Counted from the first letter of the stretch, positions 14,223 through 64,000 are shown. The stretch: DNA of 64,000 nt from Mobula hypostoma (GCF_963921235.1 NC_086129.1:35836001-35900000), one strand, 5' to 3'. Numbers and translations are program-made. Notes: a model not told the origin generated them from the sequence alone.

Positions 14223-14433
14223 TGGAGTTTGCCCCTGTCAATTGAGATGGAGACATATTGAAGGAAACACATCACAGTTCAGAGTGACAGTGTGGTTGGA
14301 AGCTCCACTTTGTCTTGGGTGGCAGGGAAAGTCCACCAACTGAAGCAGACTAACTGGTCATCAACTGCTGATAAAGTACCTTTAAAAACAGGCAGGTCTG
14401 TGGTCTGAGACACAGCTTCAAGAGAAGAGGAAG
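14223..14433 (+). promoter_or_regulatory. Type-A promoter and non-coding exon 1 of apolipoprotein copy 1
   Basis: HNF4-like sites (14223-14236; GAAAGTCCA 14327-14335), TGATAA 14369-14374, TTTAAAAA 14381-14388, donor AAG|GTGAG after 14433; colinear with type-B promoters. Confidence 0.7.
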
Positions 14434-14812
14434 GTGAGAGAAGCCCTGGATACACCATCTGTGTGATGGGGTCTAATTAAGGGGCACAGTGTATGCACAC
14501 TTAGCTGTGCATCTGTTCAGCAAATGTCTTTGCATAAAGTCAAATGTACTGTGTCAAGAATTCAGCTTTCTGTTTTCAATTGTGTGGCAGGGTACAATTG
14601 TCTGCTACAGTATGCAGTGGGAGATAAGAATACACGGGATGCCATTTATACAAGTCAGGGTTCTCATTTATCAGTGAGAAAATGTTCCACTTAAAAATGA
14701 ATAACTGTTGATGAAGGAATAGGTGTTGAATATTGATCTAAATCTTTTCATTTTTTTTTCACAGAATTTTTGAAAAGAGAGCAGGAATTCTACTTAGTGT
14801 GTGAAATCCATC

Positions 14813-16983
14813 ATGAATCAAGGGATGATCCTTGTATTAGCTGCTGCTATTTTCATGACAGGTATGAGATTCTATATCTAATCCTTTGTTTTAAATATTT
14901 TTTACACTGTTAGGTGTTTAGTGTTTCTCTTGAGCTTGCGCACCTTGGACACCAGATGTGCACACAACTGTTGAGCCCAATTTTAAGGTCAAGGTCTGAG
15001 CTTAGCAACCATTGGTTCTACAATTTGGTTCCTCTTTGGTGAAAGACTTGATTCGACACTCAGTCTGGAAAGATTTTAAACCAGGTCCCAAAAGACAAAT
15101 TATTTTACTCTAAAATCATCTAACCTCATCTCCTGAGAGGAGTACCTGATTATCCCTTCAATACGGAGTGTGTTATGGTGAAGTTGCATGGGCCTTACAA
15201 ACTGATTGCCTGCTAAATGAATAATAGGTATATTGAACTTGTTCCTGTGTTGCCACTGTGAAATGCTGCATTCCTTTTCTTTCATACAGGTTCCCAAGCT
15301 GAACTCAATAGATAGTAGATTCGAGATGCATTCTGGGATTACATCAGCCAATTGACCAACAATGACCTAAATGAAGGCTCAGAAATCAGCCAACAAGTCA
15401 AGTGAGTGTCAGCAATATTAGGAATAGTTACAGAAGTTGTGCTAGCTGGGACACACCTGGACATAGCAGTACAGGAAAATATTGACCGAAAAGCTAAAAT
15501 AGGGCTTTCTCTGCCAGTTTGAGATCAAATAGCAATGAGGCTGGTGTTTGAAATAACAGATGTTGCTTCTGGCACATGCTGAAAGTATCTCAGCAAAGTA
15601 ACGTTTATTCGTGTAATGAAATCAGATCAATGCATATAGCTATGTGTATAAGCAGGTATACCTTCAGGCATAGGAACAGCTTTATGTGAAGCCAGATGCA
15701 GCTACAGTTTATTTAAACTACAGTCATGTACAGACATGGAAAATGTAGATCTAAATAGATCTGTGTGCAGGAAGTAGCAGATATCAGATACAAGCCTTCA
15801 ACCATACCAAGGCTGTATCTGATATCTGCCACTTCCTCAACACAGATCTATTTAGGCCAACATTTCCCATGTCTGTACATGACTGTAGTTGCATCCTGTC
15901 CTGTGTTACTAAAGAACATGTGCAATTAATTCCAAAAGGTATTCTGATCCCAATGTCTTTCTTATTGTAAACCATCCAATCTTCTGCATGGTATGTTTGA
16001 CAATTGGACTTGCAAGGTGCTCTGTCTAAATGTATCTCTTTCCTGTAACGAGAATAAGAAACAACTGTCTCTTCTTTTCCAGTCACCTTATTCAGGATAA
16101 TCTGCAGGCCGTCAATGACTATGCTGAGGATCTCCGACAGAAGTTGGCTCCTTACACCGATGGTCTTCATGAGAAGATGACAGTAGACATTGAGAGCCTT
16201 CGCCAGCAGATAAGAGAACAGCTGGAAGACCTGAGGGAGAAACTTGCTCCATCTGCTGATGGAGTTCATCAGAAGATCAGCAGGAACATTGAAGAATTTC
16301 ATCAGAAGTTGACCACTTTTGCTGAAGACCTGGGCCAACAGCTGCGTAAGAATGCAGAGGAACTTGGGCAGAAGTTGACTCCCTTTACTGAAGAGCTACA
16401 GGCCAGATTGGAAGTGAGCACAGAGAACCTGAGGGAAGTCCTGACTCCCTACGCTGAGGAGCTCCAGATGAAGATTGATGAAAACATGGACACCCTCAGG
16501 CAGGATGTGGCTGCCAAAGCTGCTGAATTCCGCTCCAGGTTTAATAAGAATGTCCAGGAGCTTCGCAATAGCTTGGCCCCCTATGCCAAGGATGTCCAGA
16601 TCAAGATGAACCAACAAATTGGAGAAATGTCCCAGATGGTTGAACCATATGCCGAGAAGCTCCAGGCAAAAGTCAATGAGCATGTGGATGTTCTGAACCA
16701 AAGGCTGAACCCTTACATCGTCGAACTGAAGGCTAAACTTAACGAGAACATGGACCAGAACCTGGGCCCATTCATTGAAAATTTCAACACCAACGTTAAC
16801 CAGGGAATCGAGGAGTTCCATCAGAACCTGGCTCCCTACACTGAGCAGCTGAAACAAATCATCAGTCAGAATGTGAAGGAGATGCAGGAGAGACTTGTCC
16901 TGGGTGGAGGTAATGTTCAGCAGGATCTTCAGACCCAGCTCACCAATTTATGGGGCAACTTCTGGCAGCATCTGCAGAACTAA
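14813..16983 (+). pseudogene. Apolipoprotein A-IV-like copy 1, probable pseudogene; coding exons 14813-14861, 15290-15401, 16083-16983
   Basis: Signal peptide MNQGMILVLAAAIFMTG; exon 3 reads SQAELNR**IRDAFWDYISQL with TAG TAG at 15313-15318; exon 4 is open; AATAAA at 17143-17148. Confidence 0.85.
15716..15890. repeat. Long inverted repeat (about 80-bp arms, about 10-nt loop) in intron 3 of copy 1
   Basis: AACTACAGTCATGTACAGACATGG...GCAGATATCAGATACA pairs with TGTATCTGATATCTGC...CCATGTCTGTACATGACTGTAGTT. Confidence 0.85.
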
Positions 16984-17569
16984 TTGAGATGTAGAATGTG
17001 GCTCTATCAAACTGTGTGTCAAGACTCAGGGGTCCTCTTACTATCTCAAATGGTAATATGCCGAAATTATTTATTGTTTTTTGACTGAAAAGTATTAAAA
17101 TCAAATACTGAAACTTTGGAGCGTGAACTATAAAATACCTGCAATAAAACTTTAATATCTGAGAAGTTTTCCTTGCCGTACTACATGGTCGAAAATAGTT
17201 ATCACTAGAACTATGTAAATCATACTGCACAGAACAAAGCAATTCATCTAATTCATCCAACACACTACATCCCATTTTCCCACACGTTTCCCCAATTACT
17301 GCAAATATCTCTGACAAGCATTGGTGCAATGCAATTTTTGGAGATACTTATTGAAATCACACCTGCCCTATTCTGACATATCTTTGATGGAAATCTGCTC
17401 CTTCTGCAGCTTGGACAGCCTTCATAAAGTCTTTCGACCATACTTAACATCAGTAATTCAATCAGTGTTTCAAAGATTCTAACATAACTTCAATCCTATA
17501 TGTATTATTGAACAGGTCATTTCATCAGGCCACTGAACCTGCTAACTTTAATGTCTGCAGTGCAAGATC

Positions 17570-18100
17570 CGTAAGACATAGGAACAGAATTAGGCCACTT
17601 GGCACATCAAATCTGCTTCATCATTCAATCATGGCTGATTTATTTGCCTTCTCACCTGATTCTCCTGCCTTCTCCCTGAAACCTTTGACACAGCTACTAA
17701 TAAAGAATTGACCTACCTCCACTTTAAATATTCCCAATTACTTGGCCTCCATACCTGCATGTGGTAATGAATTCCACAGATTAACCACCCTATGGCTGAA
17801 GATATTCCTCCTCATCTCTGTTCTAAAGGGATGTCCTTCTATTCTGAGTCTGTGCCCTTTGGTTCTAGAGTCTTCGACAATTGGAAACATCCACTTCAGA
17901 AGCACTCCCTTTAAGTCTTGCAATATTTGTTAGATTTCAATCAAATTCCCCCGCAATCTTCTGAACTCCAGTGAGTACAGGTCCAAAGCCATCAAACGCT
18001 CCTCATATGTTAGCACTTTCATTCCCAGGATCATTCTTGTGAACCTCCTCAGGACCCTCTCCAACTGCCAGCACATCCTTTTCTAAATACAGGGCCCAAA
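17570..18100 (-). mobile_element. Old CR1-type LINE 3' fragment
   Basis: ORF 17738..17923 RTKGHRL...FRTEMRRNIFSHRVVNLWNSLP is a CR1 ORF2 C-terminus. Confidence 0.75.
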
Positions 18101-19864
18101 CCCATACATACACACCATATCTGTATACACACTGTCCCACACCACACCAGAACCATGTTTGGGTACCTGATATTATGACCATATGTTCTGTGCAGGTGAC
18201 TGTGGATCTCTGATGAACACTTACCCATTCATGCCAGCTGCTTATTACAAGCTTGTTTAAAGCCTGAAGATAACTACGATCAGGTACTGGACAGTGGGAA
18301 CGAGAGTTTATGCTCAGCGCAAGGAATAAGGTGTCTAGGTGCAATTAAAAGATCAGAGAGTGAGAATCGATGGAATTGGAGCAAGTGCAAACAGAGAGTT
18401 TAAGGATGCAGATAATCCAGTGGAGCAGAAAAGAAGTCATTTCAAGCGAGACAGATACAGATTCAGATTTATTTATCACATTTGTGTTAACAATGAACAC
18501 AACCCAAGGGTGTGCTGAGGCAGCCCGCAATTGTTTCCACACATTCCATCACAAACATTACTGGCCCAATATGTTCCAATAAATAACACAAGGAGCAACG
18601 ACAGCAAATTAGAAGAGACAATAGCAACAAAACAAACCCCTTTTCTATCCATTCACCCATTCACACACCCTGACAGGCCTCCAAACCCAGAGTAGTTCAC
18701 CCTTGGGCCTCCAGGCCTTGTCTCTGGATTCTCAGACTCACAGGCATCGGGCCTCCAACTTCAGACTTCACAGGACACTGATCATAGGTTTGACCTTCAG
18801 ACCTCAACTTCCAGACTTGCACAGATTTCTCACCCTGGTAACCCGTGTCTTCATGATTCCTTTGGACTCCCATGACTATTTTGAGCCCCTACTTCTACCT
18901 TCAGGCTTATAACTTTGGTTTTTCCCTCGGTACTTTGCCGGGTTTGAACCTGGAGCTTCTACTTCCACGTCAGTGGAATTTTCCATATCTACTGCTATAT
19001 CAGAGTCATGGGTTCCCACCCTAAATACATCATTGATTTTAAGTGGTGTTCAGCTTTGAGCACCAGAGAACAGAATAATTCTTCAGGCAAGTTGCCCAGA
19101 GCCAAGTCCATGACACTGGTCACGACTCAGCCACATGAGTTGAAGGTAGAAAGGGCACAAGCCCATAGTGACGGTTAATTTAAGACTTAGAAGGTCAGAT
19201 TGGGATTTCTGCAGTCATAAATGTGATCACAGTTTGACGTCTCAACTCACTTGTGCCAAAGCTAAGGACAGACTCAGGCAATAATATCCTGTTAATTCTC
19301 CCAGGCCGTTCTGTTGTAGCCAAAACATTGTGAAGCAGCCTAATCCTAGAGAGAAGGTCCATAACACTCGCCAGTGTAAATCAAGTAGTTTTTCAATATA
19401 AAGAGGGTTTCTCCTTCTGTTACCCTTTTGGACAGCGAGTTCGAGACACTTAACACCCTCGAGGTGAAAACCATTTCTCATCTCCCCTCTATGCCACTTG
19501 GCTTTTGTTGCTCTTTGAAGAAAAAAAAAGGAAAAAAAAAAAATTCGGTCCTACCTCTTTACTGTAGATCCTCATAATTTTACACCCCTCAGTCAATTCC
19601 CAAAGAAAACAACCCAAGCTTCTCTTCTCAAAGCTGAAATGATCTGGTTCTGTCAAGAGTCTTGAAAGAAGTGGCAAGTGAGAATTGATACAATGGTTTT
19701 AATTTTCCAAAGTTTTTTAGATTTGGGAAGGTTACTATTTCTTAGTCACTCATTTCAGTATTGAGCAGACTACACCTCTGTGACTGCTTCATATGTTTAC
19801 GTCCTTTCTGTGGGACGGTGGTGGAATGTTATCATTAGTACTCATAGTGTTCTGTTAAATATAT

Positions 19865-21837
19865 TGTCGCGCTCTGGTCGTGGTGGGTGGAGGGGGCATG
19901 TGGTCCTGGCCAGAACTCCTAGCAGCCAGCACTATTTATTGTACTTGTTTAAAATGCTTTCGTGGGATTATAGTGGGATGTTCAAGTTAATTTATTGTTA
20001 CCTTTCAGCTCGGGTTATTCTAATGTGCGTTTGTGGGTCACCCTGACAGTAACCAAGGTTTGTAATAATCACCTCCCCTGTCTGTGTGTGATTGAGTGGC
20101 TTCTCTCCCCGGGCCATAGTGCCTGGTCAGTTTTTGTGCTTGTCACAATAAAACTGGTAGTTGAGCATTTCTCATCTGTCATCATGGACCGAATGCTCAC
20201 CTCGCTGGTGTCAGGAGTGGGATTAGAAATTGACGGCGAGATTGAAGAACTACGACGTCAAATAGAACGCCTTAAAATCTGGGGAATAAGTCGAAGGACC
20301 GAGTAGTATGCCTCTCCCGCACCCTCAGACCAGGCTCTCGAAGACGGGACGCAGACCCAGAGGGAGGACTTGGGAACCGAGCATGGTGCTTTTCCAAGGA
20401 TCCCCGATGGGGCGAGCGTACCCAGGCTCCAAACTCTGGGGCACACAGTGGAGCATATCACCTGCCTCACTCTCAGCCCATGCAGAACCCAAGACGTCGC
20501 AGCCATGGAAGGACGGGCAATATGGCAGGCACCACCGATGCCCCTGGAACAAGAGGACAACCAAATGGCCTCAGGAGTTCACACCACAAGGTCCATCATG
20601 AAGCTCCCAGATACAATGGTACCAGCCGCTTGGAGCCTTACATGGCGCAAGTGAAACTTACGACATGGCACAGCAGATGGAGCCCCATCAAGACGACAGT
20701 ACACCTTGCCCTGGCACTGGAGGGGATGCCCTGCAGGCCCTTCTCGACCTAATATCGGCTGAGCAGCGTAACTACAGGGCCCTTATCATGGTGCTTCGAG
20801 CTGAGGCCATTGGAGGAAGCATTGAGGGAAGAACTGGGCAGCAGGCAGAACCATGTGAGAGAAAGCCTGGGGGCACTTGCAGCAGATCTCCACCACTGTG
20901 CTTGGCATGACTACCCCCAGTTCCCTCCTGCAACCCAGAAAGAGCTTGCCCTTCACACCTTTCTAAAGGTGCTGATACCCAAGTGCATTCAGAAGCAAGG
21001 CACCAGCAAAGGCAGAGAGGGCAAAACCAATTTTAGCCCCCAAAGTGTTCCAGCATCACCCCGCACACCACGAGCCCAGGCTTCTGTCACCAAGTCAGAG
21101 GAGGAAACAGACAAGCAGGAGCCAGTGAGACAGGTATAACCAGCGCTGTGCAGACCCTGCCATAGGCCACGGAACAATCTCTGCTACCAATGTGGCAAAG
21201 CAGGCCACGTGGCCAGGAATTGCCCAGCACCAGCGCCACACCGCAGCCCAGTGCAGCCAATGGGAAATGCCAAGTGGGTGGCAATACCTGAGACTTCCAG
21301 CAGAATCCTTCCGTTGTTGCCTCTCCGGGTGGGCCATTTGGATGAGGAGCATGGCTTGTACGTGGACTGCGTGGTGGAGGGCATCAGATGCCGTGCATCA
21401 GTAGGCACGGAGTCAACCAGCACCATCATCTGTCCCGGAGTCCTCCCCAGCAGGGACCAGCCAATCCTGCCTGCGTGTACAACGATGGCGGTCCAGCTGG
21501 CTACGGTCACAGGTGACTGTGCAGCGATGTGAAGAAAGAGGTGGCTGTGCATCGCAGTGGGGAAAAACACAGTGAAGCATGAGGTGTGGCCAGCTGACTT
21601 CTAGGAGTCCTGCATAATTGGCTGGACCTGCTGTCCCACTGGGGGGGGGGGGGAGGGCATGTGTGGATGTGCCAGGGGCAACTCCCTACCTCCGTGCAGA
21701 AGCCACAGTCTCCGCCAGGGAAGCTCCAGGATGCAGACGCGTTGGGGGCAGCAACAGCTACCATCGATCTCACAGCGGCCCGCGTTAGTGCAGCACAACC
21801 CACAGTGGCCCACAGCAAACCAGAGGCAATTGGCAGC
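19865..21837 (+). mobile_element. Truncated Gypsy-type LTR retrotransposon: 5' LTR, tRNA-Leu primer-binding site, degenerate gag and protease
   Basis: TG start at 19865, AATAAA at 20147, PBS TGGTGTCAGGAGTGGGATT 20206-20224, zinc knuckle CYQCGKAGHVARNC 21182-21223, decayed protease motif (RASVGTESTSTII); absent from the homologous spacer at about 55995-56180. Confidence 0.85.
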
Positions 21838-22227
21838 AACCACTATTTGAAGAAGAGAACTCTAAAGATTCAAAATCTGCTAAGACAAAACCCTTATTCT
21901 AACACTAATTCCAGTTCCAGATATCCCACAAGGCAAAAATATCCTCTCCCATTTATCCTGTCAAGATCCCTTATATGTTTCAATCAGGCCACCTCCCAGT
22001 TTTCTAAAGTGCACACACAAAAGATAACCGGTTCAGTCTTTCCTCATGAGACAACCCACCTATTTCAGATATTGTCTCCACTGAGCAGCTCCTGTCCTTG
22101 TTTAATTGAACTATTCACACCATTCCAGATGTGGTCTCACTCATACCCCATCGAACTGAAGAATAATCTGCCCACTAGTGAATGTAACCCCTCTGACAAT
22201 AAATAATACTCCATTTTATGAGCTTTC

Positions 22228-22577
22228 TCAGGTGTATAAGATGATAAGAGGCATTGATCGTGTGGATAGCCAGAGGATTTTCCTCAGGGCTGAAATGACT
22301 AGCACGAGGGGCATAGTTTTAAGGTGCTTGGAAGTAGGTACAGAGGGAATGTCAGGGGCAAGTTTTTCCACACAGAGTGGTAGGTGTGTGGAATGCACTC
22401 CGTCAGCGACGGTGGTGGAGGCAGATACAATAGGGTGTTTCAAGAGACTCTTAGGTACATGGAGCTGAGAGAAATAGCGGGCTATGGTAATCCTAGGCAG
22501 TTTCAAGAGTAGATTACGTGGTCGGCACAACATTATGGGCTGAAGGGCCTGTAATGTGCTGTAGATTTCTATGTTCT
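22228..22577 (+). mobile_element. CR1-type LINE 3' fragment specific to spacer 1
   Basis: VYKMIRGIDRVDSQR motif and TTCTATGTTC tail; missing at the homologous site near 56560. Confidence 0.85.
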
Positions 22578-23191
22578 TATTTACTGGCTGTAGCTTTATT
22601 TTCATCTTTTCTGATCCATGCTGTAGGACACCAAGATCCTTCTGTATCACCAAAACCCACCAATTACATCGTGTACTGCATATCTTTTATTTTTCCTACT
22701 AAAAAGGACAATTTCCACCATACATTTTGTCACCTCTTACATCCTCTTCACAACTTGCTTTCACACCAGTTGTGTCACTGACAAATTTAACACCGTAACT
22801 TTATCCAGGCCAGTTGTACTCGTTTTAAGACACACTGAGACACACAAGCCATCTCATCCTTCTGACCAGAAAAGTACCATTTATGCGAACTCTTGGCTTT
22901 TTCTGTTAACTATCCTGTTTTCTATATGAAACATTACCTCTTCTGTCAGTAAATTTTATTTTCACAGTAATATTTGATGTGGCACTTTATCAGTTTATCA
23001 ACTTGCAGACTTGTACCATGTGTCCCACTTTGTTCAGTTCAAGCAATAAGCTGACTTGAATGTGTATTTGATCTGAATGGTTGCCTTGACAACAGTACTG
23101 TGGCTTCCTGACTTTCACATAACCAAGTCCCACTGAAAAAGATACTTACTTTGCCCAGTCAGTTGGTTTACATGCAGTACATGCATTCATA

Positions 23192-23357
23192 TCTGCATCT
23201 AGCAAAGAACAAAATTCCCTCGTGGTTTTTGATAGTTTTTTCACAGAAATGCTAATTTTACACATGATATTCAGTCTGCATCTAGCAAAGAACAAAATTC
23301 CCTCGTGGTTTTTGATAGTTTTTTCACAGAAATGCTAATTTTACACATGATATTCAG
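23192..23357. repeat. Perfect 83-bp tandem duplication
   Basis: TCTGCATCTAGCAAAGAAC...CACATGATATTCAG at 23192-23274 and again at 23275-23357. Confidence 0.9.
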
Positions 23358-25101
23358 TGTGAGCCTGAGTGAGATCAAGTGTAAGTGTACAGATAACTGC
23401 TAAATCTCAGAGGATCCCACAATTAGCAATTTGCAGGTTATTCCATTCAGTGATGATTTCTCCAATTCCTTCCTTCGATTGGCTCTTAGTTTTAGTTACC
23501 AGATTTATAGCTTTAGACAGTTTCTGAAGGCACTGGATTAAAGTGAGTGCCTAATATCGTAACTGCCTCAGTGAGTAGATCAAATACTTACCAATAAATG
23601 AAATACCACTGTTCAAATTAATTTCTACATACTAGTTTTCTTTCTTGAGTAAATCGCCCTGTTCTGCTCATTTTCTCCTCTTTCCACTGCACTATAATAT
23701 CATTACCGCAGGGGGAAAAAAATCTCCATTTGCTTCAAGTATGCATTAAACAATCCTGCGTCTTGTCACAATTTAACCTTCCAATATATCCAGCCATACT
23801 CCAGTCTACCATTTTCCTCAAGTATCATTTACCTGAACAACCTGTTCATGTAATTTGATGTCTGGACGCAGTGCCACATTTTCAGTTTCCCCAAACTCAT
23901 TTAGTGTCACGTCCCATACTTTTGCAGCCTTGCCAATAACTCACAACAGGCATCAGCCACTTGACACAGTATTCACAGGTCAACTCTGCATCGAGTGGAG
24001 CTACTGTCCCACAGTGTCCCCATCTGGGTTCAACCCTGACCTTGAGCACTGTCAGCTTCAGATCCATCTATACATCATGTGTAGATCAAAACAGACATTT
24101 CCGTTAACAGCCAACACAATCTACGGCAGCCTGCAAGTGTCGCTATGCATTCCAACACCAACACAACATGCCCACAACGCTTGGCAGAGCAAGACAAAAC
24201 ACACAAGCAACAAAACAACTACAGCAAAACAATCCCTGTTCCTCCCTCCCACACACACAAACAAACTGTTGTCCAACCCCAGGACAGGCCTCTGGGCCTC
24301 CAGCGTCCAGTGAACTTGTAGATTCACAGACACTGGGCTTTGTTTTCCCCATTGGATTCGCAGTGGACTCAGGGCTCTGTGTGCAGTTTGCACGTTGTAC
24401 ATGAAGCAAAGTGGGTTTTCTTCAAATGCTCCTTTTCCTGACACACCTCAAAGTCAGACAGGTTGGTAGGTTATTGGACATTGTAAATTGCCGATAGACG
24501 GTTAGGATATGGGGAGATTTGAATGGAATGTGGGAAGAATTTAAAAATGCAGTTAATATAGTGTTAATGTAGGCTGTTGTTTGTCAAGGACTCCATTGGC
24601 CAAAGGCCTGTTTCTGTGCTGTGTGACTCTGTGACCATGAGGTCGCAGGTTTAAGCAACAGTGATTGTCTTGTGTGAATATGTTCACATGGAGAACTTTT
24701 AAGGCCTTAGCAGGTAAAACGATACAAAATCATAGATTCTTTTATCTCAGACAGGTCCTTGTTAGGCCCAGCATTTCTGTCTAAGGAATTAATTCCAATC
24801 ATCACACTTTCCACATGGCTTTACAATTTGCTTCCTCTCAATCTATTTGCGGAGGCAAGGGGAGATTCTTTCCATCCACTCCACAAGATTCATTCCAGAC
24901 GCCAGCAACTCATTATTCCGACATCTCCAATCTGCTTCCTTTGCTGATGATCTCGAATCAATGTCCTCAGGTTACCTAACCTGCTGCCAATGATGACAGA
25001 CTCTCCCTGTCATTAAAAATACCTCACCCCAAGTCCATAGAGTGATCTAATGTTACAGAGGTAACAAATCATGGCCTTTGGAATGAAAATTTAATCTTGA
25101 A

Positions 25102-25321
25102 TGGAATTTGCCCTCTCAGGTTGAGTTGGAGTCATGGTGAAGGCAGCAGTTCAGAGTAACATTCTTGTTGGAAGCTCCACATTCTCCTGGTTTTCAGGGA
25201 AAGTCCACGAGTCGAACACAAATGTACCAACTTTGTTATCAGCTGCTGATAAGGTGCCCTTATATACAGTGAGCGTCTGTGGGCTGCACACAGATCTCCT
25301 GGAAGAACACAGCAGAAACAG
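25102..25321 (+). promoter_or_regulatory. Type-B promoter and non-coding exon 1 of copy 2
   Basis: HNF4-like sites, inverted GATA pair TTATCAGCTGCTGATAA, TATATA at 25261, donor CAG|GTGAG after 25321. Confidence 0.75.
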
Positions 25322-51600: not shown

Positions 51601-51603
51601 TTT

Positions 51604-54600
51604 TAGAACATAGAACATAGAATAGTACAGCACAGTACAGGGCCTTTGGCCCACAATGTTATGCCGACCCTCAAACCCTGCCTCCCATATAACCCCCCAC
51701 CTTAAATTCCTCCACATACCTGTCTAGTAGTCCTTAAATTTCACTAGTGTATCTGCCTCCACCACTGATTCAGGCAGTGCATTTCACGCACCAATCACTC
51801 TCTGAGTAAAATACCTTCCTCTAATATCCCCCTTGAAATTCCCACCCCTTACCTTAAAGCCATGTCCTCTTGTACTGAGCATTGGTGCCCTGGGGAAGAG
51901 GCGCTGGCTATCCACTCTATCTATTCCTCTTATTATCTTGTACACCTCTATCATGTCTCCTCTCTTCCTCCTTCTCTCCAAAGAGTAAAGCCCTAGCTCC
52001 CTTAATCTCTGATCATAATGCATACTCTCTAAACCAGGCAGCATCCTGGTAAATCTCCTCTGTACCCTTTCCAATGCTTCCACATCCTTCCTATAGTGAG
52101 GCGACCAGAACTGGACACAGTGTGGCCTAACCAGAGTTTTATAGAGCTGCATCATTACATCGCGACTCTTAAACTCTATCTCTCAACTTATGAAAGCTAA
52201 CACCCCATAAGCTTTCTTTACTACCCTATCCACCTGTGAGGCAACTTTCAGGGATCTGTGGACATGTACCCCCAGATCCCTCTGCTCCTCCACACTACCA
52301 AGTATCCTGCCATTTACTTTGTACTCTGCCTTGGAGTTTGTCCTTCCAAAGTGTACCACCTCACACTTCTCTGGGTTGAACTCCATTTGCCACTTCTCAG
52401 CCCACTTCTGCATCCTATCAATATCTCTCTGCAATCTTTGACAATCCTCTACACTATCTACAACACCACCAACATTTGTGTCATCTGCAAACATGCCAAC
52501 CCACCCTTCTACCCCAACATCCAGGTAGTTAATAAAAATCACGAAAAGTAGAGGTCCCAGAACAGATCCTTGTGGGACACCACTAGTCACAATCCTCCAA
52601 TCTGAATGTACTCCCTCCACCACGACCCTCTGCCTTCTTCAGGCAAGCCAATTCTGAATCCACCTGGCCAAACTTCCCCGGATCCCATGCCTTCTGACTT
52701 TCTGAATAAGACTACCGTGTGGAACCTTGTCAAATGCCTTACTAAAATCCATATAGATCACATCCACTGCACTACCCTCATCTATATGCCTGGTCACCTC
52801 CTCAAAGAACTCTATCAGGCTTGTTAGACACCATCTGCCCTTCACAAAGCCATGCTGACTGTCCCTGATCAGACCATGATTCTCTAAATGCCCAGAGATC
52901 CTATCTCTAAGAATCTTTTCCAGCAGCTTTCCCACCACAGACGCTCCTGGTCTATAATTACCTGGACTATCCCTGCTACCTTTTTTTGAACAAGGGGACA
53001 ACATTCGCCTCCCTCCAATCCTCTGGTACCATTCCCGTGGACAACGAGGACATAAAGATCCTTGCAATCTCTTCCCTCACCTCGTGGAGCAGCCTGGGGA
53101 ATATTCCGTCAGGCCCCGGGGACTTATCTGTCCTAATGTATTTTAACAACTCCAACACCTCCTCTCCCTTAATATCAACATGCTCCAGAACATCAACCTC
53201 ACTCATATTGTCCTCACCATCATCAAGTTCCCTCTCATTGGTGAATACCGAAAAGAAGTATTCATTGAGGACCTCGCTCACTTCCACAGCCTCCAGGCAC
53301 ATCTTCCCACCTTCATCTCTAATCGGTCCTACCTTCACTCCTGTCATCCTTTTTTGCTTCACATAACTGAAGAATGCCTTGGGGTTTTCCTTTACCCTAC
53401 TCGCCAAGGCCTTCTCATGCCCCCTTCTTGCTCTTCTCAGCCCCTTCTTAAGCTCCTTTCTTGCTTCCCTATATTCCTCAATAGACCCATCTGATCCTTG
53501 CTTCCTAAACCTCATGTATGCTGCCTTCTTCCACCTCAGTGGGTCTATTGAGGAATAGATTTTCCACCTCACTTGTCACCCATGGTTCCTTCACCCTACC
53601 ATTCTTTATCTTCCTCAAGGGACAAATTTATCCCGAACATCCTGCAAGAGATCTCTAAATATCGACCACATGTCCATAGTACATTTCCCTGCAAAAACAT
53701 CATCCCAATTCACACCCGTAAGTTCTAGCCTTATAGCCTCATAATTTGCCCTTCCCCAATTAAAAATTTTCCTCTCCTCTCTGATTCTATCCTTTTCCAT
53801 GATAATGCTAAAGGCCAGGGAGCAGTGGTCACTGTCCCCCAGATGCTCACCCACTGAGAGATCTGTGACCTGACCCGGTTCATTACCTAGTACAAGATCT
53901 AGTATGGCATTCCCCCTAGTCAGCCTGTCCACATACTGTGACAGGAATCCGTCCTGGACATACTTAACAAACTCTGCCCCATCTAAACCCTTGGAACTAA
54001 TCAGGTGCCAATCAATATTAGGGAAGTTAAAGTCACCCATGATAACAACCCTGTTATTTTTGCAACTTTCCAGAATCTGCCTCCCAATCTGCTCCTCTGT
54101 ATCTCTGCTGCTACCAGGGGGCCTATAGAATACCCCCAATAGAGTAACTGCTCCCTTCCTGTTCCTGACTTCCACCCATACTGACTCAAAAGAGGATCCT
54201 GCTACATTACCCACCCTTTCTGTAGCTGTAATAGTATCCCTGACCAGTAATGCCACCCCTCCTCCCCCTTTTCCGCCCTCTCTATCCCTTTTAAAGCACT
54301 GAAATCCAGGAATATTGAGAATCCATTCCTGCCCTGGTGCCAGCCCAGTCTCTGTAATGGCCACTACATCATAATTCCATATATGTATGATGCTTCTTGC
54401 ACTGAGGTACATACATTTCAGCCCTTCTACCTTACTGTCTTTACAACGTTTATTCTGCTTCTCTTTCCTCAAAGCCTCTCTATATGTTAGATCTGGCTTT
54501 ACTCCATGCACTTCTTTCACTGCTCTATCGCTCTGGGTCCCATCCCCCTTGCAAATTAGTTTAAACCCTCCCGAACCATGCTAGCAAACCTACCTGCAAG

Positions 54601-55560
54601 GATATTGGTCCCCCTCGAGTTTAGGTGCAACCTATCCAATCTGTACAGGTCCCACCTTCCCCAGAAGAGATCCCAATGGTCCAAAAATCTAAAACCCTGC
54701 TCCCTGCACCAACTCCTCAGCCACGCATTCAACTGCCATCTCCTCCAATTTTTACCATCACTGTCACGTAGCACTGGCAGCGATCCTGAGAATGTCACCC
54801 TTGAGGTCCTGTTCTTCAGCCTTCTGCCTAGTTCCCGAAACTCAAACTTCAGGACCTCATCCCTCTTCCTGCCTATGTCGTTGGTCTCAACATGTATCAC
54901 GACTTCTGGTTGCTTTCCCTCTCGTACCAGGATGTCGTGCACCCGGTCAGAGACATCCCGGACCCTGGCACCCGGGAGGCAACAAACCATGCGGGTGTCC
55001 TTCTCACGTCCACAAAATCTCCTGTCTACTCCCCTGACTATAGTGTCCAATGACAACAGCTCTCCTCTTCTCCGTCCCACCCTTCTGCACCACCGGGTCA
55101 GACAAAGTGCCGGAGGCCCTGCCACCGTGGCTCACACCTGGTCGGTCGTCCCCGCCAACAGTATCCAGGACAGTAAAGTTATTATTCAGGGGAATGGCTA
55201 CAGGAGTGCTCTGCACTACCTGTCTGCTCACCTTCGCTTTCCCCCTCTGACTGTCACCCAACGACCAGCTTCCGACAGCCTAGGTGTGACTACCTCCCAG
55301 TAGCTCTGATCTGTGACTGCCTCATTCTCCCTTATGAGTCGAAGGTCATCCAGCTGCTGCTCCAGATTCCTTACACGGTCTTCCAGATCGCCCAGCCGTA
55401 TGCACTTCTGGCAGATGTGACTCTGCGGGACAGGGGAGTTCCCCCAAGACTGCCACATCTCACATGAGAGGCACATCACCGTCTCAGGAGGCATTCTAAA
55501 GAGTAACTGTGAGCAAGCTTGTCCTCTGCCTCTTCTCATCGAAGCCTCTCGAGTCAAAGC
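51604..55560 (-). mobile_element. Near full-length, frameshifted CR1 LINE (ORF1 zinc finger/coiled coil and SGNH esterase; ORF2 AP endonuclease and RT)
   Basis: ORFs 55228..55596, 54556..55125 (VCCLPGARVRD, HVETND, LHLN), 53615..54520 (GDFNFP, SDH), 52183..53572 (DFSKAFDKVPH, GVPQGSVLGP, FADD), 51784..52155; (TTCTATG)n tail. Confidence 0.95.
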
Positions 55561-58500
55561 AATTTTGCAAATCATTATGATCTGCTTCACTATCAATGGG
55601 ACCCCTAATTAATAGTAAGAGAAAAATGGAGGGCTATGGGTAACCCTAGGTAATTTCTAAGGTAATTACATGTTTGGCACAGCTTTGTGGGCCGAAGGGC
55701 CTGTATTGTGCTGTAGGTTTTCTATGTTTCTAAGTCCCAAAGAAAACAACCCAAGCTCCCCTTCTCAGAGCTGGAATGTTCTGGTTCTGTCAAGAGTCTT
55801 GAAAGAAGTGGCAAGTGAGAATTGATACAATGGTTCTAATTTTCCATAGTTTCTTGGATTTGGGAAGGTTACTATTTCTTAGTCACTCATTTCAGTATTG
55901 TGCAGACTACACCTCTGTGATTGCTTCATATGTTTACGTCCTTTCTGTGGGACGGTGGTGGAGTGTTATCCTTAGTACTCATTGTGCTCTGTTAATTATT
56001 TAAATCAACAGCAGAGTTAGACCACTTGAGCCTGCTTCCTGATTTAATGAGGTCATGATGGATTTAATTGTAACTCTGCACAGTTTTTAATCTAGTCCCA
56101 GTAATCTATCACTCCATTGCTTGTCAAGTTTCAATATACCCTGTAACTTGGCCTTAGGAAAATTCAGATCTCTGCTTCAACCACTATTTGAAAAAGAGAG
56201 CTCTAAAGACTCAAAGTCCTCGAAGACAAAACATTCGATGACCCCTTATTGTGAAGCAGTGATTCCAGTTCCAGATAACCCATGAGGAAACATCCTCTCT
56301 CGTTGATCCTGTCAAGATCCCTTATATGTTTCAATCAAGCAATCTCCCAGTTTTCTAAAGTGCACACACAAAAGATAACCGGTTCAGTCTTTCCTCATGA
56401 GACAACCCACCTATTTCAGATATTGTTTCCACTGAGCAGTTCCTGTCCTTGTTTAATTGAACTATGCACACCATTCCAGATGTGGTCTCACTCATACCCC
56501 ATCTAACTGAAGAATAATCTGCCCACTAGTGAATGCAACCCCTCTGACAATAAATAATACTGCATTTCTTATTTATTTGCTGTAGCTTTATTTTCATCTT
56601 TAGTAATCCATGCTCTCAGACACCAAAATCCATTTGTATCTCTAAGCTGTAACATTAACACCAATTACATCATGTACTGCATATCTTTTATTTTCCCTAC
56701 TAAAAAGGACAATTCCACAATTTCCACCATACATTTTGTCACCTCTTACATCCTCTTCACAACTTGCTTTCACACTAATTGTGTCACTGACAAATTTAAC
56801 ACCGTAACTTTATCCAGGCCAGCTGTACTCGTTAAAGTAAAGATGAAGTTACACCCGTGTTTCTTTGCCTGGCCATTTTGCTTACATGCAGTACATACAT
56901 TCATATCTGCATTTTGCACCGAACAGAACTCCCTCGGGTTCTTTGATGGTTTTTTCACAGCAATGCCAATTTTACACTCTATTAAATATGAGCTTTGGTG
57001 CAGTAAAAGCCTGAGCCTGAGTGAGATCAAGTGTAAGTGTACAGATAACTGCTAAATCTCAGAAGATCCCACAATTAGCAATTTGCAGGTTATTCCATTC
57101 AGTGATGATTTCTCCAATTCCTTCCTTCGATTGGCTCTTAGTTTTAGTTACCAGATTTATAGCTTTAGACAGTTTCTGAAGGCACTGGATTAAAGTGAGT
57201 GCCTAATATCGTAACTGCCTCAGTGAGTAGATCAAATACCTACCAATAAATGAAATACCACTGTTCAAATTAATTTCTACATACTAGTTTTCTTTCTTGA
57301 GTAAATCGCCCTGTTCTGCTCATTTTCTCCTCTTTCCACTGCACTATAATATCATTACCGCAGGGGGAAAAAAATCTCCATTTGCTTCAAGTATGCATTA
57401 AACAATCCTGCGTCTTGTCACAATTTAACCTTCCAATATATCCAGCCATACTCCAGTCTACCATTTTCCTCAAGTATCATTTACCTGAACAACCTGTTCA
57501 TGTAATTTGATGTCTGGACGCAGTGCCACATTTTCAGTTTCCCCAAACTCATTTAGTGTCACGTCCCATACTTTTTGCAGCCTTGCCAATAACTCACAAC
57601 AGGCATCAGCCACTTGACACAGTATTCACAGGTCAACTCTACATCGAGTGGAGCTACTGTCCCACAGTGTCCCCATCTGGGTTCAACCCTGACCTTGAGC
57701 ACTGTCAGCTTCAGATCCATCTATACATCATGTGTAGATCAAAACAGACATTTCCGTTAACAGCCAACACAATCTACGGCAGCCTGCAAGTGTCGCTATG
57801 CATTCCAACACCAACACAACATGCCCACAACGCTCGGCAGAGCAAGACAAAACACACAAGCAACAAAACAACTACAGCAAAACAATCCCTGTTCCTCCCT
57901 CCCACACACACAAACAAACTGTTGTCCAACCCCAGGACAGGCCTCTGGGCCTCCAGCATCCAGTGAACTTGTAGATTCACAGACACTGGGCTTTGTTTTC
58001 CCCATTGGATTCGCAGTGGACTCAGGGCTCTGTGTGCAGTTTGCACGTTGTACATGAAGCAAAGTGGGTTTTCTTCAAATGCTCCTTTTCCTGACACACC
58101 TCAAAGTCAGACAGGTTGGTAGGTTATTGGACATTGTAAATTGCCGATAGACGGTTAGGATATGGGGAGATTTGAATGGAATGTGGGAAGAATTTAAAAA
58201 TGCAGTTAATATAGTGTTAATGTAGGCTGTTGTTTGTCAAGGACTCCATTGGCCAAAGGCCTGTTTCTGTGCTGTGTGACTCTGTGACCATGAGGTCGCA
58301 GGTTTAAGCAACAGTGATTGTCTTGTGTGAATATGTTCACATGGAGAACTTTTAAGGCCTTAGCAGGTAAAACGATACAAAATCATAGATTCTTTTATCT
58401 CAGACAGGTCCTTGTTAGGCCCAGCATTTCTGTCTAAGGAATTAATTCCAATCATCACACTTTCCACATGGCTTTACAATTTGCTTCCTCTCGATCTATT

Positions 58501-58753
58501 TGCAGAGGCAAGGGGAGACTCTTTCCATCCACTCCACAAGATTCATTCCAGACGCCAGCAACTCATTATTCCGACATCTCCAATCTGCTTCCTTTGCTGA
58601 TGATCTCGAATCAATGTCCTCAGGTTACCTAACCTGCTGCCAATGATGACAGACTCTCCCTGTCATTAAAAATACCTCACCCCAAGTCCATAGAGTGATC
58701 TAATGTTCCAGAGGTAACAAATCACGGCCTTTGGACTGAAAATTTAATCTTGA

Positions 58754-58973
58754 ATGAAATTTGCCCTCTCAGGTTGAGTTGGAGTCATGGTGAAGGCAGC
58801 AGTTCAGAGTAACATTCTTGTTGGAAGCTCCACATTCTCCTGGTTTTCAGGGCAAGTCCACGAGTTGAACACAAATGTACCAACTTTGTTATCAGCTGCT
58901 GATAAGGTGCCCTTATATAGAGTGAGCGTCTGTGGGCTGCCACAGATCTCCTGGAAGAACACAGCAGAAACAG
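58754..58973 (+). promoter_or_regulatory. Type-B promoter and non-coding exon 1 of copy 5
   Basis: Single GATA-GATA-TATA module (TTATATAG 58913-58920); donor after 58973. Confidence 0.75.
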
Positions 58974-59430
58974 GTGAGAGGAGCCCTGACGCTCACTTTC
59001 CTCCACCCCAGCGAGCTTGCCTGCTTCTCCTTTTAACTACTCTCAATGGACAGCTTCACTGATCAGGCAATTGGTCAAGGCACAGAAACAAAAGAACAGC
59101 TTTCTGTTTCTGTAATGTTACAGGGTATAATTAACTGGGAATTTGATAGGTTCTTCATTAGTATGGGATCAAAGTTTATGGGGAGAATGTAAGAGAATGG
59201 GGCTGAGAGAGAAAATAAATCAGTTTTGACTGAATGGACGAGCAGATTTGCTGGGCCAAAAGGCTCAATTCTGCTCCTGTGATTTATGGTTTTATAACTG
59301 ACACGTCACAGACTAGATGTGTGGAGGATACTTTCTCTGGCTGAAGAGTTCAGGATCCCGGGGTGGGGTCAGAGTTTCAGAGTAAGGGGTGTGCCATTAA
59401 GGACTTCAAAAAGAAAGAATGTTGTAAATT

Positions 59431-60542
59431 GTTCAAAAAAGGTAGTAGGAATAGTCCGGGTAATTATAGACCAGTGAGCCTTACATCTGTGGTGGGAAGT
59501 TTGGCCAGGTGGATTCAGAATTGGCTTGCCTGCAGAAAGCAGAGGGTCGTGGTGGAGGGAATACATTCGGATTGTAGGGTTCTGAGACCTCTACTTTTCA
59601 TGATTTTTATTAATGACCTGGATGTGGGGGTAGAAGGGTGGGTTTGCAAGTTTGCAGATGACACAAAGGTTGGTGGTGTTGTAGATAGTGTAGAGGATTG
59701 TTGAAGGTTGCAGAGAGACATTGATAGGATGCAGAAGTGGGCTGAGAAGTGGCAGATGGAGTTGAACCCGGAGAAGTGTGAGGTGGTACACGTTGGAAGG
59801 ACAAACTCCAAGGCAGAGTACAAAGTAAATGGCAGGATAATTGGTAGTGTGGAGGAGCAGAGGGATCTGGGGTACACGTCCATAGATCCCTTAAAGTTGC
59901 CTCACAGTTAGATAGGGTATTTACGAAAGCTTATGGGGTGTTAGCTTTCATAAATCGAGGGATAGAGTTTAAGAGTCGCGGGGTAATGATGCAGCTCTAT
60001 AAAACTCTGGTTAGGCCACAGTTGGAGTACTGTGTCCAGTTCTGGTTGCCTCACTATAGGAAGGATATTGAGGCATTGGAAAGGGTACAGAGGAGATTTA
60101 CCAGGATGCTGCCTGGTTTAGAGAGTATGCATTATGATCAGAGATTAAGGGAGCTAGGGCTTTACTCTTTGGAGAGAAGGAGGATGAGAGGAGACATGAT
60201 AGAGGTGTACAAGATAAAAAGAGGAATAGATAGAGTGGATAGCCAGCGCCTCTTCCCCAGGGCTCCACTGCTCAGTAGGAGAGGACATGACTTTAAGGTA
60301 AGGGGTGGGAATTTCAAGGGGGATATTAGAGGAAGGTTTTTTACTCAGAGAGTGGTTGGTGCTTGGAATGCACTGCCTGAGTCAGTGGTAGAGGCAGATA
60401 CACTAGTGAAATTTAAGAGACTACTAGACAGGTATATGGAGGAATTTAAGGTGGGTGGTTATATGGAGGCAGGGTTTGAGGGTCGGCACAACATTGTGGG
60501 CCGAACGGCCTGTACTGTGCTGTACTGTTCTATGTTCGATGT
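59431..60542 (+). mobile_element. Internally deleted CR1 fragment inserted in intron 1 of copy 5
   Basis: Interrupts TGTAAATT|AGAGGTC, which is contiguous in copies 2-4; FADD and LVRPQLEYC motifs; 3' tail. Confidence 0.92.
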
Positions 60543-60893
60543 TTAGAGGTCAGTAGGTCTTTGGAAGTCTGGAGGTCTCAGTCACTGAGCTCATTCAAAG
60601 CAGAAATGGATATATTTCTGGTTGCCATGGGCACCTAGGTATATTGGGAGAATGCAGAAAATGGTGGTGAGCTCAATGATCAGCTTTGATCTCAATAACT
60701 GAACAGGTTCAAAGGGCTGGATGCTGACTCCTTGTATAACAAATAGAGTTCAGAAGGGGGCAGTAATACTCGGGTAGATTTTCCATGTGGGTTTAAACCC
60801 TGGACTAACTTTGATTGTTTTTTTTTCCATAGATTGACTGTAAAGGGACATAGAAATAATCTGCCATACTCAATATCATTTGAGAACACCACC

Positions 60894-60942
60894 ATGTTTC
60901 CCAAAGCAATCCTCCTGCTTCTGGCTGCTGCCTTTCTCACAG
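60894..60942 (+). CDS. APOA4: ApoA-IV-like copy 5, exon 2
   Basis: Signal-peptide exon, Kozak context, GT donor. Confidence 0.9.
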
Positions 60943-61373
60943 GTATGAGATTCAAATATTCCTGTTCTCTTATTCTGGGACGATGACTGGGATTTTATTG
61001 CCATTTCCAGTCTTCATAGGTGGTTCTTGATTGACCTTGGACTCACTAGCTTCACTTCACTGATGTGCACCTGATTTTAGCTCTGATCTGAATTCTGGAG
61101 CCCCTTGCATTGTCCATTCCTCCACACATCAGCTCCTGGTTGCAACTTGTTCCTCCCCTTACTGGGTTTGTTTTAAGTCCCCGTTACAAATAATCAAAGA
61201 CCTGGGATTTTACTCAACGACTCATTCAGCTACAGTATATCCCCAAAGAGGAGTGATCAGCAAGATACAGAGTGAAGTCTTGTTACGCATCATTTGGTTG
61301 AATGAACAGTAGATGTTGTGGAATGTTCCTGCTGTGTTCCTACCCTGATCACCTCAAATTTTCCTTCCCATAG

Positions 61374-61500
61374 GCTGTCAGGCTGAGATCAATGGAGATC
61401 AGATTCGAGATGCCTTCTGGAATTACATCAGCCAAATGACTGAGGAAGCCCAGGATAGTGTCGAGCTGATCCAGAGCTCAGAAATCGGACAGCAACTCAA
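61374..61500 (+). CDS. APOA4: ApoA-IV-like copy 5, exon 3
   Basis: 127 nt open exon; AG/GT boundaries. Confidence 0.9.
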
Positions 61501-62254
61501 GTGAGCATTTGGGGTTTTAATGGGTACTAAGAATAGATCAGCAACGTCTATTGAGCAAGGAGCTGGCCAGGCATGCCTTAGGACTGGAGCACTGCAACAG
61601 TCCACGAGGTTCTTTACAATTATTTTATAGAATCTGATCCTCACCAACATTATTGTCCAGCTCTATTTGTTAATTGACCAGTTTAAGATGCCAGTGAAGT
61701 CTCAACTATGGACACAGATTTCCTTCCCTTAAGGACATTATGGACTTCTATAATAACACAGTCAATCTGCTATAACAAGAGTGATATTTTGAATTCCAGA
61801 TGTATTATTTATCTACTCTAATGTAAGTGTTTTTCACGAGGAGCTGAGTTCATTATTTCAGATTAATCGTCATGGTTTTGTAGATTGGTTTTACCAGGAA
61901 CATAACCACTGTGCTGTAATATTAAAGTGAAGGTTCCTCAGCAAGTTTAAAAACAAACAAGAATGAGAATAAATGATAAAAGGGGTAAACTCATCAGGGC
62001 TTGTGGAACAGATACCCAGCAAAACTTAACAGATAGGTAATAATAAATTGAATGAAAACTATTGTGTGACTCACATCCTCCCTCTGCAATGAACATCTAC
62101 AGTTATCCTTAGAAGATTTTGTGATCCAAAATGTCCTTTATAAGCTCTCCTTTCCAGTGTACATTTGTTTCAGAACCAGCCTTGTATGTAGCTCTGTCTA
62201 AATGTACCTCTTTCCTGTAACGAGAATAAGAAACAACTGTCTCTTCTTTTCCAG

Positions 62255-63155
62255 TCACCTTATTCAGGATAATCTGCAGACTGCCAATGACTATGCTGAG
62301 GATCTCCGACAGAAGTTGGCTCCTTACACCGATGGTCTTCATGAGAAGATGACAGTCGACATTGAGAGCCTTCGCCAGCAGATAAGAGAACAGCTGGAAG
62401 ACCTGAGGGAGAAACTTGCTCCCTTTGCTGATGGAGTTCATCGGAAGATCAGCAGGAACATTGAAGAATTTCATCAGAAGTTGACCCCTTTTGCTGAAGA
62501 CCTGGGCCAACAGCTGCGTAAGAATGCAGAGGATCTTCGGCAGAAGTTGACTCCCTTTACTGAAGAGCTACAGGCCAGATTGGAAGTGAGCACAGAGAAC
62601 CTGAGGGAAGTCCTGACTCCCTACGCTGAGGAGCTCCAGATGAAGATTGATGAAAACATGGACACCCTCAGGCAGGATGTGGCTGCCAAAGCTGCTGAAT
62701 TCCGCTCCAGGTTTAATGAGAATGTCCAGGAGCTTCGCAATAGCTTGGCCCCCTATGCCAAGGATGTCCAGATCAAGATGAACCAACAAATTGGAGAAAT
62801 GTCCCAGATGGTTGAACCATATGCCGAGAAGCTCCAGGCAAAAGTCAATGAGCATGTGGATGTTCTGAACCAAAGGCTGAACCCTTACATCGTCGAACTG
62901 AAGGCTAAACTTAACGAGAACATGGACCAGAACCTGGGCCAATTCATTGAAAATTTCAACACCAACGTTAACCAGGGAATCGAGGAGTTCCATCAGAACC
63001 TGGCTCCCTACACTGAGCAGCTGAAACAAATCATCAGTCAGAATGTGAAGGAGATGCAGGACAGACTTGTCCTGAATGGAGGTAATGTTCAGCAGGATCT
63101 TCAGACCCAGCTCACCAATTTATGGGGCAACTTCTGGCAGCATCTGCAGAACTAA
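62255..63155 (+). CDS. APOA4: ApoA-IV-like copy 5, exon 4, followed by a unique 3'UTR
   Basis: 22-aa helical repeats; AATAAA at 63306-63311. Confidence 0.92.
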
Positions 63156-64000
63156 CTGATAAGTAGAATTTACTTTGTTGTCCTCTTGGTGCACAGATAA
63201 AGGAATGCTTAAATGTAACTCTCCCCACTCTCTTTATTTTTTGCAAAGAGGAATATATCAATATCATTGATTATATTTTTGAGTCTGAATTTCTGAAGTA
63301 TGTACAATAAAAGTTTGAATTACCTTTTGATCCATCACATTTGCATGTTTTATTTTCATAATAGAAATCGTCTCTTCGTATACTTACATTTTTGTAAATA
63401 TTATAAGAAATTCACTCATGTAACACATTTCCTTCAGTGTTGTACCATTGGTAATTAACATTATCTGGACTGAGCCCTGGAAATGACCACTTCTCAATGA
63501 TTTTGCATCACTTCAGATTTTCAATTCAGACCCTCCTTAGTCTGAGACATCCTTGTTGAATTGGTGCCATTTCTGGTTTTGTCTATCTCAGACTTATATT
63601 TTTTGCTATTCTCCCTCAGGAGCATTTGAGGAAAACCGGAATATTTTTCCCCAGAGGCAACTCTCTGTGGGCACTTCTCAACCCAAGGCATGCTGCTAAA
63701 TAGATTGAGACTCCTAAACAATGAATCTTTTACTTATTTTGTGTCTTCAGGCTTGTCTGCAATATGGTACAGTCCTCCCACTATGACAGGTGTCCAAAGG
63801 TTGAGGCATTGCTTTTCAAATGATTGCACACTCCTTACATGGTGATGTATATGCTCACTCCAGATTCAAGCTAGTTTATTGTCATATACAGCAGGGTGCA
63901 ATGAAATTCCTCACTCGTGTGATGTTCACTGTGTAAGCAGTATACATATACAATAACAAATACTACAATGGTAATAATACATAACGTATGGTCCATGTCT

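Follow-up and report, generated by a model that had tools for sequence, protein, structure and literature searches.

How could a tandem gene array come to hold, between two differently built end members, genes that pair the 5' part of the one with the 3' untranslated region (3'UTR) of the other? This question is raised by a 64,000-nucleotide (nt) stretch of Mobula hypostoma DNA (GCF_963921235.1, NC_086129.1:35836001-35900000), the whole of which is referred to here as the window. It contains five ApoA-IV-like genes in tandem on the + strand, all five with an intact last-exon open reading frame (ORF) of 317 codons. Copy 1 has a 5' part of its own (type A), copies 2 to 5 have a common one (type B), and two 3'UTRs are present, UA in copies 1 to 4 and UB in copy 5. 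In the three internal copies, in other words, a B 5' part is followed by the copy-1 type of 3'UTR and flank. This layout had been described in the original prediction, and it was confirmed both by motif counts of four and one for the two 3'UTRs and by BLAST of the window against itself (self-BLAST). We consider it probable, at about 0.72, that the locus is a long-lived ApoA-IV-like tandem array evolving in concert, in which an exchange with anti-Lepore topology was followed by further exchanges. It should be noted that the evidence on expression and on related species comes from contigs and, for the distribution of UB, from words sampled in runs, and that the organism termed A carries the same species label as the source of the window. 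The genes are laid out as follows.

14153-17161, + strand: copy 1, with the type-A 5' part and UA, delimited by sequence comparison, with its stops read directly.
Up to 14433, + strand: promoter block and exon 1 of copy 1.
14765-14861, + strand: exon 2 of copy 1 (ATG at 14813).
15290-15401, + strand: exon 3 of copy 1.
16083-16983, + strand: exon 4 of copy 1.
24156-28568, + strand: copy 2, with the B 5' part and UA (exon 2 ends at 26178; exon 3, 26609-26735; exon 4, 27490-28390).
33269-37735, + strand: copy 3, with the B 5' part and UA, from a gene model and an RNA contig.
Up to about 34478, + strand: TATA and exon 1 of copy 3.
35228-35337, + strand: exon 2 of copy 3 (ATG at 35289).
35776-35902 and 36657-37557, + strand: exons 3 and 4 of copy 3.
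42436-46902, + strand: copy 4, which is the copy 3 sequence shifted by +9167.
57809-63330, + strand: copy 5, with the B 5' part and UB (exon 2 ends at 60942; exon 3, 61374-61500; exon 4, 62255-63155).
59431-60542: repeat insert in intron 1 of copy 5.
16030-16983, 27437-28390, 36604-37557, 45771-46724 and 62202-63155, + strand: intact exon-4 ORFs of copies 1 to 5.

The motif TAATTGAGATGTAG of UA occurs four times in the window (at 16981, 28388, 37555 and 46722) and the motif TAACTGATAAGTAG of UB once (at 63153). The corresponding 3' parts are these.

16984-17669, + strand: UA 3'UTR and flank of copy 1, 98.7% identical to those of copies 2-4, with 6 fixed differences.
28391-29075, 37558-38242 and 46725-47409, + strand: UA and flank of copies 2, 3 and 4.
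63156 onward, + strand: UB of copy 5, recognised by sequence comparison, a loose end in RNA and UB words in runs.
17143, 37717 and 63306: AATAAA of copies 1, 3 and 5.

In the self-BLAST, copy 1 matched copies 2-4 over 16019-17669 with 98.2-98.6% identity, and copy 5 over 16019-16997 only. Copies 2-4 in turn matched copy 5 over the whole 5' part, through 63167. Upstream of 16019, copy 1 and the B-type genes share just short blocks of 63-69% identity, in agreement with the claim that copy 1 has a distinct promoter, exons 1-3 and introns. Type-A exon 3, as seen in copy 1, is 15 nt shorter than its B counterpart; coding identity between the types is 51% in exon 2 and about 75% in exon 3, and divergence in the introns is essentially at saturation. 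The sole strongly conserved part 5' of the border is the block of promoter and exon 1 (z = 47). The A and B types are old paralogues. As a separate observation, contig depth at 17400-18200 was extremely high in all four runs, by which this region is a high-copy interspersed repeat, and it marks the end (17669) of the flank common to copies 1-4. The high-copy repeats assigned to spacer S1 lie at about 17560-18200.

Downstream of position 16018 the picture is reversed, and all five genes have one module in common.

16019-16983, + strand: exon-4 module common to all five genes, from border comparison; one contig of organism B spans exactly 16019-16983.

Exon 4 is 98-100% identical among the five genes. 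The left border of this identity, 64 nt before exon 4, is sharp at 16018/16019, with 12 differences in 15991-16018 followed by 1 in 89 nt. The right border lies directly after the stop codon, where copy 5 departs from the others from 16984/63156. Both homology borders are found at homologous positions, namely 16019 and stop+1 to stop+14. The possibility that the left border is an illegitimate junction was considered and rejected, because the final 120 nt of intron 3 of the A and B types can still be aligned collinearly (z = 6); the border is therefore best taken as the edge of homologous exchange. The hallmark of concerted evolution, a near-identical segment with sharp borders and anciently diverged homologous flanks, is thus present. 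Copy 1 takes part in this homogenisation: its exon 4 has 13 fixed differences in 979 base pairs (bp), the final four at 16769-16904, and is about 98.7% B-like. The last 77 nt of its intron 3 are B-like as well. Copy 1 is a mosaic, and there is no pure A gene in the window. Copy 2 carries 7 private substitutions within 95 bp of exon 4 (27859-27953), 5 of them amino-acid-changing, and one further site in common with copy 5; this cluster resembles a short tract of conversion whose donor is not in the window.

The spacers tell of exchanges on a larger scale.

17670-24155: spacer S1, between copies 1 and 2, homologous piecewise to S4.
29076-33268: spacer T, between copies 2 and 3, repeated at 38243-42435.
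47410-57808: spacer S4, after copy 4, T-like to about 48799 and then S1-identical, interrupted by a long interspersed nuclear element (LINE).
27954-39054 = 37121-48221, + strand: perfect tandem repeat with a period of 9167 bp and an exact run of 11,101 bp.

Between S1 (18325-25778) and S4 (48621-59430), homology extends over six pieces with 87-100% identity, and lineage-specific repeat insertions separate these pieces. One block, which begins in exon 4, takes in UA with its flank, the spacer and a B 5' part, and reaches the following exon 4, is present twice, at 16019-27425 and at 45760-62190. This duplicated block begins and ends at homologous positions of one exon, which is the signature of unequal homologous recombination between the exon 4 of an upstream and that of a downstream gene. 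An array formed in this way is expected to have internal genes with a downstream-type 5' part and an upstream-type 3' part, as is observed, and to this extent the anti-Lepore analogy of the original prediction is apt. Spacer S4 itself is recombinant, by crossover or conversion within the spacer: to the left of its junction at 48799-48840 it is identical to the spacer between copies 2 and 3, and to the right it matches S1 (18540-19404), with identity for about 900 bp. Copies 3 and 4 show zero differences, and only this 9167-bp unit is recent.

The hybrid genes are expressed. Transcripts combining the B 5' part with the A 3'UTR had been predicted, and run X10 (organism A) indeed contains a 1339-nt contig that skips the introns and has the B-type exon 3 letters GGA GAT CAG. 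This contig has the letters of copies 2-5 at all copy-1-specific exon-4 sites and those of copies 2-4 in UA (16996G, 17082C), and it ends at 17161, 18 nt past AATAAA. The contig represents a B-5'/UA mRNA of the copy 3/4 type that has been spliced and polyadenylated. In each of copies 2-5 the spliced ORF of 358 amino acids is intact, the introns of the copy 3 model are of the GT..AG type, and the exon 3-exon 4 joint is present in RNA contigs. The hybrids are intact genes, and their transcripts undergo splicing and polyadenylation at the UA site.

The original prediction further held that A appears to be dead. This is true of copy 1 in the window, which has TAG TAG in frame in exon 3 (15313-15318) and would accordingly be a pseudogene copy of the A type, but it does not extend to the type as such. 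In run X3 (organism A, very high depth), A-type exon 3 reads AGA GAG CAG, is stop-free, and is joined GT..AG to exon 4 (15401 to 16083). B-type exon 3 is also present in this run, and a UB continuation was observed at 16997 as a loose end. Of 503 positions in the A-type intron contigs of X3, 21 depart from copy 1, and organism B has the X3 letter at no fewer than 11 of these. The exon-4 contigs of X3 mix copy-1 letters (16185A, 16251A, 16271A, 16769C) with non-copy-1 letters, and UA shows a variant, 17067G with an extra A after 17072, that is found in none of the four UA copies of the window. Conversely, the private letters of copy 1 (16253C, 16315A, 16366G, 16903-4 GG, 17082T) were present in none of the runs. 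Most simply, these data can be read as pointing to an A-type gene other than copy 1 that is intact and expressed, either a paralogue outside the window or, less likely, a deep allele. GAG CAG was likewise read in the DNA of organisms B and C. The occurrence of GAG CAG in RNA and in two relatives, where copy 1 has TAG TAG, indicates that the A type is alive, probably as a gene outside the window.

The same two relatives allow the age of the hybrid arrangement to be judged. Both the junction of A intron with exon 4 and the B-type junction at 16019 are found in organism B as well as in organism C. Per-contig depths, which are a rough proxy for copy number, amounted in organism B to 54-64 over the A 5' part, as compared with 236 over the B 5' part, 274 over exon 4 and 208 over the UA flank; in organism C the values were 4.7, 11.5, 20.3 and 12.8 in the same order. 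These values suggest a similar multi-copy array in which UA copies outnumber A 5' parts. Since the borders are common to the relatives, and exon 4 and UA are multi-copy in them as well, the hybrid state is old and not private to this genome.

How these observations could have come about may be outlined as follows. There would have been two old types, A with its own promoter, exons 1-3 and UA, and B with its own promoter, exons 1-3 and UB. Gene conversion would keep the large last exon near-identical between them, with tracts that stop where homology collapses, at 16019 and just past the stop codon. This near-identical exon 4 would then be the substrate for unequal homologous crossing-over, and a crossover between an upstream A exon 4 and a downstream B exon 4 would yield the order A - [B 5' / A 3'] - B together with a duplicated spacer. 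Later, unequal exchanges both within exon 4 and within spacers may have changed the copy number and reshuffled segments, the latest of them giving rise to the exact 9167-bp unit of copies 3 and 4, and an intact A-type gene would be expressed from another copy or allele. What was observed directly is how the genes are built and where their borders lie, the duplication of the spacer, the mosaic pattern of identities, the hybrid mRNA, and an A exon 3 free of stops in RNA and relatives; the order of events, the native 3'UTR of each type and the place of the intact A gene are what we infer. The mosaicism of copy 1, the near-star relationship of the B 5' parts considered below, the recombinant S4 and the tract in copy 2 together favour ongoing concerted evolution over two discrete events.

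Several points weigh against this scenario. Firstly, a crossover switch point was sought inside exon 4 by means of diagnostic sites, and none was found: the hybrids group with copy 5 at 13 of the 13 copy-1-specific sites, and copy 5 has one private site. The hybrids equal copy 1 from 16984 onward, and a switch between the parents is thus confined to 16904-16984, at the end of the homogenised module. The crossover can therefore be placed only in this interval, or it has been erased by gene conversion. Secondly, the contigs of the two relatives display the same borders and multi-copy depths and not a two-gene A-B state; their depth is as rough a measure as noted above, and contigs do not link 5' type to 3' type in the DNA of these relatives. 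Thirdly, the view that UA is native to the A type draws on position logic and on the unlinked UA variant 17067G in X3 and the relatives. Lastly, a miscount in the assembly could account for part of the exact 11.1-kb repeat.

These points bear on three other explanations. The first of them is that the internal genes are not hybrids at all, the combination of B 5' part and UA being ancestral. Copy 1 would then have arisen by fusion or conversion of an A 5' part onto a B body in intron 3, and copy 5 would have gained another 3' end. Indeed, from the sharp border at 16019 onward, exon 4, UA, flank and spacer of copy 1 agree to 98-100% with their counterparts in the internal genes, the hybrids and copy 5 are equal over the whole of exon 4, and multi-copy B 5' parts and UA already occur in the relatives. 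However, UB works as a 3'UTR. Its AATAAA lies 153 nt from the stop codon, a distance like the 162 nt in UA, it is transcribed, and it is conserved in other species. The alignment between UA and UB is weak but exceeds all 500 shuffles (z = 4.3, or z = 3.1 without the first 16 nt), which would be the pattern expected of old paralogous 3'UTRs. UB accordingly looks like an old paralogous UTR and not like a captured sequence. Moreover, this explanation requires two independent chimeras instead of one, and X3 contains A-type exon 3 transcripts and a UA variant that is missing from all four window copies. We therefore regard it as unlikely.

The possibility that UB is a repeat inserted after the stop codon was also examined and is unlikely, as UB has no other copy in the window, has its own poly(A) signal and is transcribed contiguously with exon 4. 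With respect to its distribution, all sampled words of UB (63170-63330) were present in X3, in organism B and in 4 small runs of organism F, and none of them in runs X10 and X11. The organism F runs that hold UB words are not among the runs matching the gene body. This could reflect a conserved UB beside a more diverged coding exon, or it could have an unrelated reason.

The second explanation is the history put forward in the original prediction, that is, a single exon-4 crossover in an A-B pair, late amplification of one hybrid, and a dead A. It accounts for the gene order (A/UA, three times B/UA, B/UB), for the duplicated spacer and for TAG TAG in copy 1. The proposed crossover in the shared exon 4 retains the support of the hybrid anatomy, the duplicated spacer and the homologous borders, but it lacks a switch within exon 4, and the exon 4 of copy 1 is itself 98.7% B-like. 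The amplification step fares worse. In the B 5' part, copy 2 differs from copies 3/4 by 84 substitutions (2.5%) and from copy 5 by 69. Unique substitutions in about 3330 sites number 29 in copy 2, 55 in copies 3/4 and 40 in copy 5, and the divergences among the three are near equal (2.1-2.9%), giving a near star. Since copy 2 is no nearer to copies 3/4 than to copy 5, a simple late amplification is not supported, and the recombinant S4 likewise speaks against it. The stop-free A exon 3 that is spliced to exon 4 in X3 and present in two relatives does not fit a dead A, and the 21 of 503 intron positions at which X3 departs from copy 1 imply a further A-type gene. Taken together, this strict succession of two steps seems quite improbable, and the interpretation given in the original prediction is supported in part.

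The third and weakest explanation, a partial assembly artefact in which the perfect 9167-bp units over-count a hybrid with two copies or one, draws on the exactness of 11,101 bp at an offset of 9167 and on the zero differences between copies 3 and 4, but it has a low probability in view of the 2.5% that separates the 5' part of copy 2 from copies 3/4, by which there are at least two distinct hybrids, and of the depths in organism B relative to single-copy flank (exon 4 about 5-fold, UA flank and B 5' part about 4-fold each), which fit a similar copy number.

A further observation concerns the core promoter of copies 3 and 4. Both of these copies, and no others, have a 43-bp insertion in the form of a tandem duplication (34343-34428 and 43510-43595). 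It repeats GATA-like and TGAACTTTG motifs and is missing from copies 2 and 5, with the indel at copy-2 position 25245.

The assignment of the genes to a family was based on several sequence features. The exon-4 ORF matches the Apolipoprotein A1/A4/E domain (PF01442), with 224-234 bits against a cut-off of 90 for copies 3 and 1 (E = 1.5e-66 for copy 3 and 1.5e-69 for copy 1). The closest solved relative is human ApoA-IV (2.4e-58), with ApoA-I at 1.4e-22 and ApoE at 1.6e-08. Prolines in the exon-4 product are spaced by 33, 22, 22, 22, 44, 22 and 22 residues, which is the 11/22-residue repeat pattern, and the genes are laid out in 4 exons, of which exon 2 encodes the signal peptide and the last one most of the protein. 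On these grounds, the genes are members of the exchangeable apolipoprotein family that are nearer to ApoA-IV than to ApoA-I or ApoE. Matches in protein databases are distant, with 25-35% identity overall and 25-30% for those named APOA5 (birds) and ApoA-IV (medaka), a metagenomic protein being the other kind of match, and relatives from cartilaginous fish were not found in a search of a 5.8-billion-protein collection. Orthology is unsettled at such low identities. In tetrapods, the APOA5/A4/C3/A1 cluster adjoins ZPR1. In the window, a minus-strand ORF at 2862-3149 has ZPR1 (2qkd) as its best solved match, which is weak (E = 0.022), and has no Pfam match; the match agrees with the ZPR1-adjacent position named in the original prediction, within the limits of its weakness. 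An Rfam search of the window gave no match. ApoA-I and ApoA-IV have been reported as apolipoproteins present in cartilaginous fish (PMC6854765).

Mobile elements are found in several of the spacers. The element that interrupts S4 (49804-55731, minus strand) is LINE-like, with endonuclease (PF03372, PF14529) and reverse transcriptase (PF00078) ORFs and a reading frame broken up among several ORFs. Related 3' fragments were noted at 5972-6608 and 22230-22577, and also at 59494-60543, in intron 1 of copy 5. A 280-residue ORF in the spacers between copies 2 and 3 (31147-31989) and copies 3 and 4 (40314-41156) has no Pfam match; its Cys/His-rich motif resembles the C-terminal part of L1-type ORF2, and it is probably a 5'-truncated LINE. 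Lastly, a GC-rich (55%) insert that occurs only in S1 (19862-21837) has many overlapping ORFs with no Pfam match, and is possibly a retroelement fragment.

The mechanism considered here is a textbook one. The array is an ordinary tandem family product of unequal crossing-over and gene conversion, and no new mechanism is involved. Its value lies in being a clean and well-resolved case of a homogenised exon as a recombination hot spot, at which modules of promoter and signal peptide would be recombined with different 3'UTR modules; it also comes from a lineage for which few accounts of apolipoprotein loci exist. In the literature searched, neither hybrid ApoA-IV genes nor the present locus in cartilaginous fish were found to have been described. 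There are also consequences for annotation, in that the long last exon makes copy 1 look intact despite its two stops, copies 3 and 4 are identical and cannot be separated by short reads, and an expressed A-type gene exists outside the content of the window. Two RNA-like runs contain hybrid mRNA without the sampled UB words, and a third contains both. Quite tentatively, the 3'UTR swap might be regulatory, such that a near-same B promoter and protein are expressed differently under UA and UB and the array is kept in at least three species as a set of promoter-by-3'UTR combinations; we hold this to be doubtful rather than likely.

Anti-Lepore haemoglobins are beta-delta fusions flanked by the normal delta and beta genes. 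As in these and in L/M opsin arrays, the internal genes described here take their 5' part from the downstream parent and their 3' part from the upstream one, and are located between both parental types. The intergenic spacer is likewise duplicated, and the exchange is at homologous positions in a highly similar exon. Unlike in those systems, the parents are anciently diverged outside one homogenised exon, no diagnostic crossover switch is present, later exchanges overprint the first event, and the state is fixed or old, with borders and copy depth common to two relatives, instead of being a rare variant. Gene conversion tract behaviour and the evolution of gene clusters by unequal crossing-over are subjects of published reviews (PMC3924818, PMC6060901). 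The array resembles concerted evolution by gene conversion in that exon 4 is 98-100% identical, adjoining introns are saturated and the borders lie where homology collapses. It differs from plain concerted evolution in that the module is also the recombination substrate by which promoter and signal peptide are swapped against the 3'UTR. Zebrafish has four apoA-IV paralogues (apoA-IVa, b.1, b.2 and b.3), three of which are very alike (PMC4348566). The ray array is comparable to that cluster in having several ApoA-IV genes, some of them very closely related, but no hybrid 5'/3'UTR structure has been described in zebrafish, and the zebrafish genes are syntenic with human APOE, whereas the array described here adjoins a weakly ZPR1-like exon.

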